The notes beneath the pieces are model-generated. The model was given only the letters and a program-made list of their open reading frames with translations, was not told where the DNA came from and made no database searches. A stretch of 64,000 bases of DNA from Phallusia mammillata (lineage: Eukaryota). Location of the stretch: assembly GCA_965637545.1 (NCBI GenBank), contig OZ281500.1, positions 24,738,001 to 24,802,000 on the forward strand, read 5' to 3'. Positions 3,501 through 61,600 of this stretch are shown piece by piece. The stretch's first letter is position 1; each line of letters begins with the position of its first letter. A program made the position numbers and the translations under genes.

Positions 3501-6500
3501 CGGTTTCCTAACTTGTTTGCTCTCAGTCTGGGGGCTTTCCAATTAACCGTCTCTAACATTTATTGGAATATTTTCTGACACCAAGATCACACATAGAAAC
3601 ACTATACACGGACTTGACAAACGATTTATTTAATAAAAATAAAGTACTTCTGTATATAGAATACATCATGCAGACGTTTCAACAATCATAAGTTGCCATC
3701 ATCAGTGCATGCTGTCAGTTGACCATAAGATTAAACTTGCAAACGTAAAATTTTTCCATTCATTTTTCGAAAATTTAATTGTAGTTTAGATATTGTTTAT
3801 GCTTTGGCCATTTGACTTATAATAAGTTTTTTTTAGCACATCGTAAAAAACATCGTCAAAACGTTTTATTTCAGCCATTTTTTGTAATTTGCTCTTTGAG
3901 TTTCGCACTTTAAATTTGTTGTTGGCATTAAAACTTTTCTTATAAATCAACTCTCAAAGTCACATTGGCGCTGCAAGCTGCGTCAAGAGGTTTACGTAAC
4001 CCGATTTCGGCAACCAACCAAAACCGAAAATTGTCGAAAATCAAGTTTTCTTGTTTTGGCAGAAAAACCTTAAAAACCAAATAAAACTTTTAAAAACTTT
4101 GCATTTACAGAATAATTTGAACATCGGTTCGGTGTAGTTGGGTTGTTACATGTGTTTTGGTTTGCCACAATTACAACGTTGCAAGTTGTAACATTTCACA
4201 TTTCAGTTTCAACATCAAGGTTTTACGTGAATACGTGTGAAAACATCGTGCCTCTTTGGAACTTGAGTGCGCTTGGTGCATGACCAGGTGAGGGTAAATA
4301 TAGAAATCGGTGAAAAACGTGAACCCGTACGATCTTTATGTGAAAACCGCGGGATTAAGGCGAGCGGAGAAAACGTGCAAGAGATGCGACTCAAATTTTC
4401 TGCGTTAGAGCGATGAGATTGTTGGGTTCATGTTTCAACCAGCCTGTGTTTTAACGTATTGAGATTTTCTTGGTCTAATTTGTTACCAGTTTCGCATTAA
4501 CTGCTAACAATTCGGAACTGCACAACTATCAAACTGAAAGTCTCGTGTAACACAACCGTTGTTTCAGTTTTCTTGTCAACCGTATGTCTGTAAGTCTTAA
4601 CTCTAATAGTTTAATTAAAACTCATTAGTTAAAACGTTTCCAAGTTATAAAGCCTAAAAAATGTGGTGTTAGAATGTAGCTTGACGAGTTTGGCACACGA
4701 AAAACTTTGGTTTGGTGCGTTTGTAAAGTTCAAAACCACTGCACTGTGTCGTAACAAACCACCTTAATAAAGTTCGCCGTCGTTCCCCCGTAAAAGTGAA
4801 ACAACTTACTTTTCGAGTTCAGTGTGGGAATCGCTTTTGTAATCCTTTGGCAGCAAATGCATGTGTGATGCGGTTAACATTGGGTCGCTCCTGAAAAAAA
4901 TAAGATTGTTTAAAAAATAAAAATAACAAAAGCCTCACTGTAAAGTACAGGCGTGAATACTAATAATAATTAGATCTCCTGAAAAATCTTGAAATTGTTT
5001 ATGGGGTTTGTTTGCGCAAACAGCAGTTATTTCCACAACGTTTTACTTAAACGCAGTTTTTTTTCTGCTGCAAAAACCGCAAATCTTCAAAAATGGTTTG
5101 CAAACGAACAAAATAAAATTCTTCTTCCCACAAACCGCATTGTTGTGGCATTCATACGTCACAATAAAAAGACACTGCAATAAACGGTTTGGTGACATTA
5201 CGCAGAAAAGGTCACACTGAAAAAACAAGGACGACTGGGCGGGAGGAATAAACAAAATTTCCATGCAGCAAAACTGTTTTCGTTTGAGATTATCACGAAA
5301 CAATCAAGCGGACGTGGTTCGTTCCACAATAAACAATCGCGCTGTGATGTCACAAGTAAAAGTTTGAAAGTTAGTGTGACCAAACAAACGGAAAGAAAAT
5401 GTTGTTTTGAAGTTCACAAAAACGCATTTATACAAACGATGACATTTTATGCAAAGCAGCTACAACTGAATAGATGAAGTTACTTTATAACAGTTGTCGG
5501 CAACCGTCGGTCCGCGAGGATTTCGTATACTTTTTCAGGTTAAATGCTTTAAAACATTTTGCCCATGGATCCCGAGGTTGATAAACTAATTTTATTTTCA
5601 TTGCTAAATATTTGTAGGTTTGAAGGCCGGTCCGCGATGAAATTTCGGTTTTAAAAACGGTCCGCAGTGCAAAAAAAGTTGCCGACCCCTGCTTTAATAG
5701 AGTGACGTTCATAAACTTAACATTTAATCACGTGACAACACATCGCCCACATCCGGGACCTTTTAACTTGACGTCAGCGCAAAACATCTTCTGCTCAGCT
5801 GTTTCGACTCGTGTCATTAAATTATTTAAACTCCATCAAAGTTAGCGGGAACGTTCGACCCCCGGTTACTAGGGGTTACCGATTGACGCATTGTGACGTC
5901 AGTACGTCGATCTTGGGTAAAGGTTAGAACTCATAGGTCGCCGCGCGCGGAGGTTCGACGATATTTGTTTTAGAGTGAAGCAAATGCCGGCGGACACATC
6001 AGACCAGGGAGAGGAATTAAGTGAAGGGGAAGTGCTGCAAATATCACATGGAGCGACATGTTCGATAAACTGGATCACTACACACTGATCGAGACAGTTT
6101 TTGTTTCACACTGTCGTTGGTTTGCATCAGTTGATGTGAACATGTCAAATCATAAGCGGAGTTGTTGAAACACCATTAAAAACGCAATTACATGTTCAGC
6201 TAATGATAAATACTTGCGGACATTTACATCGGCAATTGGAAGCGTAGAGACGTAAAAATCTCAAAAAAATGAAAAAAGAAAAAAAGTAGCAGAATAGATG
6301 TATTTTCAGCGGGAAAAGTGGGTTAAATGGAAACAATTACGACGTTCTATAACAAAGCATAGATGATTGTCGCACCGGTTTATTAGTAGCATCTGAATCA
6401 GCACTACACTGTAAGCGTCACAGCGTATACCCCCTTACCTGTCATGACTGTAGTGGAATATTCCAGCTGGTCGGGTGTCGCCGTTCATCGCTTGATGGAT

Positions 6501-58696: not shown

Positions 58697-61600
58697 ATGG
58701 CAATGTGGGATCCCGTTCAGGCTGGGGCGGCCGCTTGCTACCTCAGAATGTCTCCGAAAGAAGTAATGGAAATGCAAGCGCAGCCCTTTGCTGGGCGGAA
58801 AGCGGTCAGTAGAAAAACATAAGTTGTTTTGAACATAAGAAATTTATATTTTGTTCAACGTGCGAAAAATGTTTGCTGCCGGGCATAATGTAAAAAATCG
58901 AGTATTAATCTACCAGCCGTTTTTATGATAAATATTCGATATTATAAATTGGAATTTTATTATAAAATAACAAAGGCGTCTTGTATGGGACGTAGAAACG
59001 TCGAATGTTGATGATAAAAACTGCTGGACAAGCAATACTCGTTTGTACAACTTAGATTTATGATGTAAACATCCATTCAGAAATAAACCACATAAAAAGT
59101 TCATAATTTTAACGAAATTAAAGATATCCAATATTTTACTTTTAGGTCTGGGTTCCTTGCAAGACGAATGTTTACCAGAAAGCCGAAGTTATTGGAGCTT
59201 CAGAGAAGAAAGGATGCAAACTTGTTAAACTTGCAGCATCGGGTGACGTAAGTCATATTATTAAGTTATTATTTCTTCTGATCATATTATTTCTGTGTTG
59301 GGCCGATTTGTTGATAACTTGCAAACAAATTTTGACTGATAATCAGGTTTTTTCGCTTATATATCGATTCAAAAATCGTGATGACCGACTAGAACAGCAT
59401 TTGTATGTGATTATTTTAGTATAAAGCAGGGAATTTTTTAAATAGTAGAGAACGTTTTTAGGTTGTTATGTGATAAACAGTACTTTCTTCCCAAAGCAGT
59501 TCTAGTTACAAAAACTTTTTGAGACCCCGGCAACTATTATTATCTTTGCCAATTTTAGCACACATAAAAAACACCACTAAAATTAAAAGAATTCTACAAA
59601 ATTATATGTTTAGTATGTCATTGAACTTAAAACCATGTTTGAAAAACACAGCGACACAATTTTCCATTTAATGTCAATCAGACTGCGAAGCCTGTTTTGT
59701 GTCGTAACATCTTTGTATGTTGTGGTGAGCTTGTCTGCTTTCACACATTTCTTGTGTCACAATTCATGATAAGTTTCCACTTAAACACGTCGCAATCCTG
59801 ATAAAACGCCGCCATGCATATTTGGAACGTCTGCTTTGTTTCGAGCAATTACCACATTCCAATTATAACCGTTGTGACGTAACAAGAATGAACTTGGACA
59901 AGTGTTATGTCATAAAGAGTGTAATAGTTCCATATATGGTGCGATTACACATTGAAGGTCGTTTGAACGTTGTTGTGTTGTTTTTGGGGCTCGAACCCAG
60001 GCTTTACTACAAGTTACCAATCGTGATGTATGTTGTATTGCATACAATCTAAATGACGGAATCAACAAATTTAAACAAAACAATCTAACAAACTTGGTAT
60101 TGTGCTTTCTCGGCCGTTTAACTAACTTTGATATTTTAATAACAACCATCTGCTGTGGGAGAACGGGGAATTTATGTATTGTTGCACCAATATAAATTAG
60201 TTTTGATACAAACGAGTTTTTAATAGAAATGTTTGTAAATGTGATATTTCAAAACATTCAATCCTTTCTCGAGCACCACGAACAACTTGTTTTTTATCGA
60301 ATCTATTTTTTGTTTATTTTTACAAATTTTTTTAGGAAGCGAATGTAAAAGAGGAAAACATTCACGAACAAAACCCGCCCAAGTTCTGTTTGATCGAAGA
60401 CATGGCCAACATGACGTATCTGAACGAACCAGCTGTGCTCGATAACCTCAGGCTGAGATATGAGAAGTTTATGATTTACGTGAGTAGCGGAAAAAAATAC
60501 GAAGTTATGTTTAATGTTTTTGTCGGACATATTTTTCGCTACTAATTATTTTATCTGGAAGTTTGCGATTTTGGCTGTTTATTATAATTTGTAATTAATA
60601 ACGCCCCATTATAGTAAAAACTAAAGAAACATTTCTGACTATGCCAATGTAGTCAAAGGATTTCATTTAATCTTAGTAGTTAATTTAATTATCAATTACT
60701 ACAATTATTACAGTTTTTTTTTTATTTGTTATTGAGTTTCTTGACCAATTAAGTTTGACTTGTTTATCTATGTCGATTGTTTTCGATTCAGACGTATTCG
60801 GGATTGTTCTGCGTCACAATCAACCCATACAAGATGCTTCCGGTTTACGAGACATATGTTGTTGCTTGTTACAAGGGGAAGCGGAGAAGTGAAATGCCTC
60901 CACACATTTTCTCCATCGCCGACAACGCTTACAACGACATGCTGAGGAGTAAGTTATATAACTTATTAAATAAGCTGTAGCTGCCAGGCATAATGTACAA
61001 ACGAGTATTGCTCTTCCAGTAGTTTTTATTACAAACAACCGACGTTTCGACGTCCCATAAAAGACACCTTCATTAGGATAATGACATCTTGCAAGACAAA
61101 CTGCTGGAAGAGCAATTATTGTTTATACATGTAAAAAAGCAATGATTTGGTCATTAGTTCAATGATCGGGCCGGCCCGTACTGCTCTATATCAAACGACA
61201 TGCTTTTCCTAAGTTGTTGGGAAACATTGATTTTTTATTTACACATCTTTGGTGGACGATCTTCGAAATCAAATAGGCGAATTTCACACAAACCGAACAA
61301 ACCTAACAACATTTTCTTATTTTACAGACCGGGAGAATCAATCTATGCTGATCACGTGAGTATATGACGTATTACAATAATGACGTAACAATCACAATAA
61401 CATGTTTTCAACAGCGGGGAATCAGGAGCGGGAAAAACTGTCAACACGAAAAGAGTGATACAATATTTTGCAACTGTTGCTGCGTTGGGAGATGGACCCA
61501 AAGACGGTGATCAAGCTAAGGCGAAAGGGGTAAGTTTTTGGCTGAAGGTCAACTGTTGTGTGGAGGCAAAAGCAACTACAAAAAACTCGGTTAAACCGGG

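Follow-up and report, generated by a model that had tools for sequence, protein, structure and literature searches.

We analyzed a 64-kb window of a 240-Mb sea-squirt assembly (C7:24738001-24802000; "window" here means this whole stretch, and positions are counted from its first letter), in which hammerhead ribozyme motifs recur as short dispersed repeats that very probably stem from Penelope-like elements (PLEs). A preliminary description, made from the letters of the window, had placed hammerhead cores at six sites, 3667(-), 6789(+), 21044(+), 35072(-), 51817(+) and 61030(-), with a degenerate half-site near 58972. Using sequence comparison and a covariance model, all six sites and the half-site were recognized as homologous copies of hammerhead-bearing repeats. 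The model (R1) was built from an alignment (A1) of 38 copies, all from outside the window and covering five groups named 1A, 1B, 2, 3 and 4, and the window was scanned with filters off. Seven copies were detected at E values of 1e-14 to 1e-4, namely the six listed sites, every one of which holds such a repeat copy, and 29848-29911(+), together with two further degenerate copies. The pair at 29715-29938 was absent from the earlier list. The matches, in order of score, are as follows.

6782-6849, plus strand, 58.3 bits
51806-51869, plus strand, 57.0 bits
21037-21104, plus strand, 52.7 bits
3657-3721, minus strand, 50.1 bits
29848-29911, plus strand, 47.9 bits
35071-35131, minus strand, 46.3 bits
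61025-61092, minus strand, 25.7 bits
29786-29846, minus strand, 13.0 bits, decayed inverted partner
58957-59017, plus strand, half copy, weak at about 12 bits (the figures for the insertion 58865-59049 are 12.7 and 12.1 bits)

The motifs are far more frequent than the background, both in the window and in the genome. The exact pattern CTGATGA-N8-30-GAAACGTC was found twice in the window, at 3667(-) and 21044(+), against none in 100 shuffles, and GACGTCGAAACGTC with up to two mismatches occurred six times against 0.2 expected. Genome-wide, the same generic pattern gave 1854 matches against 5 in a reversed control, the family 1 pattern CTGATGA-N8-30-GACGTCGAAACGTC gave 999 exact matches against 0, and the 14-mer GACGTCGAAACGTC alone gave 1678 against 2. 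Four of the window copies, 6789(+), 21044(+), 61030(-) and the half copy at 58972(+), have about 80 nt in common and represent family 1, which is divided into subfamilies 1A and 1B. The copies at 3667(-), 51817(+) and 35072(-) have no full partner inside the window; their genome-wide relatives number 594 first-look candidates with 82-93% identity (family 2), 155 (family 3) and 176 (family 4), respectively, and for these three orphan copies the identity of 80-93% reaches past the core boxes. Since all six sites have multi-copy relatives, all six are members of repeat families, four in number, and the earlier expectation of several subfamilies with thousands of copies genome-wide is borne out. 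It can be argued that the motifs are chance combinations of short core boxes in AT-rich DNA, as the boxes are indeed short and four of the six listed copies depart from the strict core. However, this explanation has almost no probability left, considering that the exact pattern appears in none of the window shuffles, that the genome and its reversed control differ so widely, and that each site has tens to hundreds of relatives similar well beyond the boxes.

The copies also share the secondary structure of a hammerhead. The core boxes align across the 38 copies of the alignment, and in helices I and II (four pairs each) 90.6% of cells hold standard pairs, compared with 74.3% after shuffling and 14-44% in controls with slid partners. 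Two-sided changes were observed in 43 cells against 15.7 expected, and none of 500 shuffles reached the observed score. Four of the eight helix pairs vary at both of their positions: pair 16-54, for instance, is found as C-G in 21 cases and as A-U in 12, and pair 28-41 as G-C in 16 and as A-U in 14. The stem covariation previously noticed between copies is thus confirmed, and the compensatory changes fall at positions that a hammerhead requires.

With regard to the type of hammerhead, the published hallmarks of the minimal type-I form (min-HHR) found in PLEs are an unpaired base after CUGAUGA, a G10.1-C11.1 pair, a palindrome at 15.1-16.1 and no helix III loop (PMC4209133, Cervera & de la Peña 2014). 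These are present here, with ACGU replacing helix III, in agreement with the minimal type-I assignment and the palindrome first proposed for the motifs. An unpaired A or U follows CTGATGA in families 1-3, the closing pair G10.1-C11.1 (column pair 25-44) is G-C in 22 of 31 sequences and G-U in 7 of the 31, helix II consists of 5-7 bp, and a helix III loop is absent. In families 1-3 the palindrome A-C-G-U is contained in GAAACGTC at positions 15.1-16.1 and could let two copies pair with each other. In family 4, the extra unpaired base is missing, and the palindrome region is A-C-A-G-U, with a 1-nt insertion.

The integrity of the core was tested at its invariant positions (C3 U4 G5 A6 N7 G8 A9, G12 A13 A14, the A15.1-U16.1 pair, and H, that is, not G, at position 17). 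Two of the nine window copies, 3673-3705(-) and 21053-21088(+), keep all of them, and genome-wide the core is intact in the 1854 copies with the generic pattern. The literal core CTGATGA...GAAA..GTC, previously ascribed to all six sites, is therefore intact at 3667(-) and 21044(+), and in each of the remaining seven copies of the window one or more invariant positions are altered, as in the following cases.

6789(+): CTGATAA (G8A)
61030(-): CTAATGA (G5A)
29848(+): CTGATAT and GAAACGCC
35072(-): AGC where the family has AGT (U16.1C)
51817(+): GAAATGTG where the family has GAAACGTA (A17G, GTG)
58972(+): 5' box missing

With G8A, the copy at 6789(+) is predicted to be inactive, as is 29848(+) because of its two altered boxes. 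The copy at 35072(-) lacks the cleavage-site U because AGC replaces AGT, and 51817(+) is predicted to be uncleavable because GAAATGTG puts a G at position 17. As a separate observation, the 3' strand of helix II in family 1 (GACGUC) can pair with the cleavage-site CGUC in a GACG-UCGAAA-CGUC hairpin, e.g., at 21075-21088. For the 21044 copy, minimum-energy prediction gives this alternative hairpin, which would mask the cleavage site. When two copies were co-folded, the energy was below that of two monomers, but the expected trans helix III was not reproduced, and the calculation is not counted as evidence.

Most copies in the window are short fragments of repeat ends, and three are head-to-head pairs with a tail on one arm (29715-29938, 58865-59049 and 60971-61130). 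Their boundaries and parts are as follows.

3595..3729, minus strand: family 2 PLE end fragment; hammerhead 3657-3721, core 3673-3705 (CTGATGA..GAAACGTC); the 3' region after the hammerhead includes the optional tail (..GTCAAGTCCGTGTATAGTG)
6716..6862, plus strand: family 1A insertion of 147 bp, 5'-truncated and tail-less; hammerhead 6782-6849
21041..21124, plus strand: family 1A end fragment of about 84 bp, truncated immediately 5' of the hammerhead; core 21053-21088 intact, with a C-U mismatch at the first helix I pair; short tail-less 3' end
21409..21446, plus strand: family 2 fragment truncated within the hammerhead, with only the part 3' of the cleavage site left
29715..29938, both strands: family 2 head-to-head inverted insertion; left arm minus, tailed, with the decayed hammerhead 29786-29846; right arm plus, tail-less, with hammerhead 29848-29911
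35071..35165, minus strand: family 4 fragment; hammerhead 35071-35131
51809..51905, plus strand: family 3 fragment; hammerhead 51806-51869
58865..59049, both strands: family 1B head-to-head insertion; left arm minus, 58865-58925, post-cleavage region and tail only; right arm plus, 58972-59049, 5' core box absent, sequence GTAGAAACGTC
60971..61130, both strands: family 1B head-to-head insertion; main arm minus, 60971-61092, tailed (..CATTATGCCTGGCAGCTACAGCTTAT), core CTAATGA; inverted partner arm short, 61089-61130

Two of these insertions are flanked by target duplications. A perfect 15-bp duplication, ATAAAGTGGGAAAAT, lies at 6701-6715 and 6863-6877 on either side of the 147-bp insertion and is present exactly twice against 0.01 expected, and an 11-bp duplication, AGAATCGGTAA, lies at 29704-29714 and 29939-29949 around the family 2 pair, again exactly twice against 0 expected. 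The consensus of family 3 is ..GATGAC|CTGATGA-T-GACAA-TAGCAC-TTGTC-GAAACGTA|GTCAT, and that of family 4 is CTGATGA-GACC-TTATA-GGTT-GAAAC-A-GT-N. Two structural readings of individual copies were rejected. First, an extended helix I at 61030 and 58972 was discarded, because the long flanking complementarity is the inverted partner arm of a head-to-head insertion. Second, 35072 cannot be drawn as a three-helix monomer: the GCTG/CAGC pairing leaves no space for a helix I hairpin, and this reading is also contradicted by the AGT of the family in place of the AGC found here and by position 17, which varies freely among copies.

The origin of family 1 is indicated by its association with coding elements. 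For subfamily 1A, a reading frame with DKG and YVDD motifs in locus L031 (C1:1884000-1891000) ends about 120 nt before a hammerhead. The frame gives matches to reverse transcriptase (RT) and then to GIY-YIG, a convincing pattern in the expected order, although both scores fall short of the curated cut-offs; its nearest Atlas clusters are HTH_animal + GIY-YIG proteins, and an inverted, truncated copy lies upstream of it. A query with its C-terminal 265 amino acids gave at least 1277 first-look candidates in the genome, many of them open frames of about 800 amino acids. For subfamily 1B, the linkage to the frame and the tandem array is read from coordinates alone: at C2:24753692-24761575, tailed hammerheads occur every 2600 bp and alternate with three frames of 799 amino acids, and at C1:12055585-12056569, a hammerhead lies 135 nt after a truncated frame with a head-to-head partner facing it. 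The family 1 hammerhead is thus situated about 120-135 nt downstream of an RT + GIY-YIG frame, in the spacer of about 200 nt of a 2.6-kb tandem array. Two local observations may be added. In L031, a masked run at 3395-3600 (C1:1887394-1887599) breaks the RT part, and both sides of it repeat about 100 amino acids of the frame. In L010, L012 and L013 (C1:597986, 940108 and 1036187), the family 1A module from CTGATGA to ..AAACTTGA, about 95 nt, stands in a different conserved context on both sides, which suggests either that two element families have the module in common or that the junction with the interior of an element is what these loci show.

The scars of insertion show the same kind of element. 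In family 1, the shared upstream sequence extends from 18 to 790 nt, and the 3' ends form two separate groups at a distance of about 25-30 nt from each other, with 334 copies having the exact tail end ...GCAATAGCTTAT; two 3'-end classes were likewise seen in family 2. The target duplications in the window measure 15 bp and 11 bp as given above, and among the listed genome positions there are many opposite-strand (-,+) pairs, most copies being solitary. Taken together, we consider it very likely that the motifs are min-HHRs of the terminal region (pseudo-long terminal repeat, pseudo-LTR or pLTR) of PLEs in this genome. The window would accordingly hold about nine remnants from four families, mostly with core mutations predicted to be inactivating, and its family 1 copies are read as 5'-truncated insertion remnants of autonomous PLEs.

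Several results weigh against this assignment. No Rfam hammerhead model (Hammerhead_1/_3/_II/HH9/HH10) matched the whole window, either at the gathering threshold or at E<=10, or the 181-nt pieces around the two intact copies; the models are silent because they expect a helix III hairpin, which is absent here, but the assignment thus has no curated model behind it. The covariation is mostly between families and the copies are related by descent, so the compensatory changes represent few independent events. The frame of L031 is partly masked and scores below the curated cut-offs for both RVT_1 (E 8e-6, 26.1 bits, cut-off 29.6) and GIY-YIG (E 1.3e-3, 19.4 bits, cut-off 22.6). A tblastn search with the L031 frames, which covered the window and all 61 loci, found no PLE coding sequence in the window, and none within 1.5 kb of the 26 loci of families 2-4. 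Finally, the RNA evidence consists of assembled contigs, which show splice joints and not RNA ends.

Compared with known systems, the copies most closely resemble the min-HHRs of PLEs. A metazoan genome is reported to contain thousands of them, belonging to several consensus families, with dual motifs on opposite strands 100-700 bp apart and a majority of solitary, probably truncated motifs (PMC4209133). The similarities include the type-I CUGAUGA and GAAA boxes, the extra unpaired base, the helix II of 5-7 bp, ACGU at the cleavage site, the location in the PLE terminal repeat (family 1), several families with compensatory changes, and thousands of copies that are solitary or in opposite-strand pairs at distances of about 100-700 bp. 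The differences are the host, a tunicate, for which we found no published description in the literature on hammerheads and Penelope in Ciona, and family 4, which lacks the unpaired base and has ACAGU. As in Penelope/Poseidon PLEs (Evgen'ev & Arkhipova 2005; PMC11167929), tandem arrays give pseudo-LTRs, copies are 5'-truncated, often in inverted head-to-head pairs with target duplications, and the 3' end may carry a tail of about 30 nt, which goes back to two start sites of reverse transcription; such a tail was explained by two internal starts just downstream of the hammerhead (PMC11167929, Frangieh et al. 2024). In the anole PLE, in contrast, the frame begins inside the hammerhead, whereas the sea-squirt hammerhead is found 120-135 nt past the stop codon of the preceding frame, within the spacer of about 200 nt. 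With Rfam Hammerhead_1 (RF00163) and related models, the copies share the catalytic core boxes and helices I and II, and they differ in having no helix III hairpin and no match at any threshold tried.

On this basis, the abundance of the motifs could be explained by the way PLEs are copied. In the full element, the hammerhead occupies the spacer that separates one RT + GIY-YIG frame from the next in a tandem array, and in an inserted copy it lies about 50 nt (short form) or about 85 nt (tailed form) from the 3' end. Being so close to the 3' end, it is kept by nearly every 5'-truncated insertion. Reverse transcription begins at the 3' end and often halts early, so most insertions would be short 3' fragments consisting of the hammerhead and the tail, and because both target strands can be primed, many insertions would be head-to-head inverted pairs with a target duplication. 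Judging from the literature, two copies in a multimeric transcript may pair through ACGU, form helix III and cleave after GUC; this cleavage would be weak and probably assisted by protein, and the role of the hammerhead would be the processing of multimeric PLE transcripts. In previous work, single min-HHRs showed no detectable cleavage in vitro and dimers were weakly active (PMC4209133), and dimer cleavage was also described by Lünse, Weinberg & Breaker (RNA Biol 2017), as cited in PMC6765202. The hammerhead of the anole PLE was cleaved only with the protein of the element, and its cleavage was dispensable for insertion in vitro (PMC11167929). As single motifs are inactive, dimers weak and protein needed in these reports, solitary mutated copies in introns are expected to be inert.

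The preliminary description had attributed the motifs to a non-autonomous system and named neighboring Penelope RT/GIY-YIG frames as something to look for. Such frames do adjoin family 1, in L031 and in the C2 array, so this family marks the ends of autonomous PLEs; for families 2-4, none was found at the 26 loci, and no coding partner is at hand. Families 2-4 may therefore be extreme truncations of unsampled PLE clades or non-autonomous derivatives, the latter being rather improbable. In one form of the latter reading, which we regard as possible but doubtful, families 2, 3 and perhaps 4 are dedicated SINE-like units (short interspersed elements, consisting of the hammerhead and a 3' recognition/tail region) mobilized in trans by PLE enzymes. 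Besides the missing RT or GIY-YIG remnants within 1.5 kb, the copies of a family have little upstream sequence in common (no more than 19 nt in family 3, mostly no more than 31 nt in family 2), the starts of several family 3 copies cluster within a few bases, about 10 nt ahead of CTGATGA, and a 2026 preprint derives animal retrozymes from PLE pLTRs (10.64898/2026.07.22.740005). However, each family was sampled with only 6-9 copies, additional upstream sequence of 45-132 nt does occur in some members of families 2, 3 and 4, and family 1 has the same short forms although it clearly comes from coding PLEs. In addition, more divergent PLE clades were outside the frame scoring (144 of 1277 candidates). 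Somewhat less likely again is that families 2-4 are all true non-autonomous mini-PLEs, with a whole unit of about 95-140 nt made up of the hammerhead and the RT start/tail region. If this were true, the module would be the minimal cis-acting cargo copied in trans by sea-squirt PLE enzymes, and would provide a natural definition of what the PLE reverse transcriptase recognizes.

Retrozymes in the strict sense, i.e., tandem direct repeats of a few hundred nucleotides that self-cleave into small circular RNAs (circRNAs), are a very improbable source of the copies. Dimerization-dependent type-I hammerheads with a palindromic helix III are likewise a hallmark of metazoan non-LTR retrozymes, as described in PMC7229834 and in a preprint (Li, Clavereau & Pollet 2026), in which metazoan retrozymes are proposed to derive from PLE pLTRs. 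But retrozymes are short-period direct repeats giving circRNAs, whereas the present copies are scattered, either singly or as inverted pairs: the window has no hammerhead-containing tandem array, nearly all close neighbors among about 200 listed positions of the genome lie on opposite strands as (-,+) pairs, and direct repeats were seen only at the 2.6-kb period of the coding PLE arrays. Moreover, the vertebrate retrozymes of the preprint are depleted from introns, and here at least two copies are intronic. As a side observation, a tandem array without hammerhead boxes (158-bp unit, about six copies, 87% matches) occupies 35573-36505, about 440 bp from the family 4 hammerhead and in the same intron.

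We regard the motifs, read as min-HHRs of PLE ends, as a real and abundant feature whose kind was named correctly at the outset, and as an ordinary instance of a published phenomenon that leaves current understanding unchanged. For annotation, such short units should be masked as PLE ends and not listed as new ribozyme genes or microRNA (miRNA)-like hairpins, since inverted PLE scars could pass for miRNA precursors. For example, Rfam calls the palindromic pair at 29763-29927 a MIR6217-like hairpin (E 0.002, 33 bits, cut-off 110), which is a mislabel. The genome contains active-looking PLEs, with tandem arrays and open 799-amino-acid frames, and thousands of hammerhead remnants in or near genes, and with it a tunicate joins the animals with abundant PLE min-HHRs. 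The copies also form a natural series of 5' truncations with tailed and tail-less ends, which is consistent with the internal-initiation model of PLE reverse transcription.

The genes around the copies were identified from spliced RNA contigs and Pfam matches, as listed below.

1774-1878, 2301-2403, 4810-4889, 6438-6549 and 6889-6994, minus strand: exons of a host gene, from spliced RNA contigs
30636-30947, plus strand: PHD-finger exon (Pfam)
34800-35039 and 38690-39028, plus strand: TFIIS-N exon and Elongin_A exon of an Elongin-A-like gene (Pfam matches on open frames)
53.3-54.6 kb, plus strand: synaptotagmin-like C2 exons (Pfam)
63634-63909, plus strand: myosin-head exon (Pfam)

In the host gene at 1774..6994(-), the same joints were found in four runs from four studies, and all introns are CT..AC on the plus strand, i.e., GT..AG on the minus strand. 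The copy at 3667(-) lies in sense orientation in a 2.4-kb intron (2404-4809, joint 2403->4810), and 6789(+) lies antisense in a 339-nt intron (6550-6888, joint 6549->6889), of which the insert makes up nearly half. The earlier claim that every copy is intronic therefore holds for these two by spliced contigs and is probable for others from their surroundings: 35072(-) would begin 37 nt into an intron of the Elongin-A-like gene, antisense to it, 51817(+) appears to be intronic upstream of the synaptotagmin-like C2 exons, and the pair at 29.8 kb is placed in an intron by its flanking exons.

It had also been suggested that copies in sense orientation could cut pre-mRNAs. The only copy in the window that is both sense and intact is 3667(-), and it keeps all invariant core bases and forms helices I and II in its minimum-energy prediction. 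Nevertheless, that such intronic copies cut the host pre-mRNA and regulate the gene can hardly be expected. The copy is solitary and has no helix III, a configuration for which cleavage was undetectable in single min-HHRs and weak even in dimers (PMC4209133), the PLE hammerhead tested in vitro required the protein of its element (PMC11167929), and helix II of 3667(-) includes two G-U pairs. Furthermore, the exons around its intron are joined normally in the four runs, and its sister copies decay freely, which argues against selection.

Some further observations concern transcripts and other RNA genes. The family 2 pair, at 29704-29949 with its duplications, appears to have gone in precisely where an exon meets an intron in a plus-strand gene that has the PHD-finger exon downstream; the AGAATCGGTAA duplication takes in the end of the exon together with GTAA from the 5' splice site, giving two candidate donors 235 bp apart. 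In RNA-like runs, contigs from other loci match only the repeat part of 6792-6867 and 3651-3687 and continue into unrelated sequence (e.g., a 505-nt contig in X7 matching the repeat part only); therefore, some 1A and 2 members elsewhere are transcribed or lie within transcripts. The 16-nt spliced leader of Ciona, which served as a lead only, had no match in the window at up to two mismatches and no exact match in the loci. At 28123-28212(-), a weak U6 small nuclear RNA-like match (25.6 bits against a gathering score of 44) contains internal deletions and could stem from a U6 retrocopy that has decayed. A tRNA gene with anticodon GUC (Asp) occurs in two identical copies, at 14374-14445 and 20275-20346, both on the minus strand and 5.9 kb apart, with Rfam scores of 59.4 bits each.

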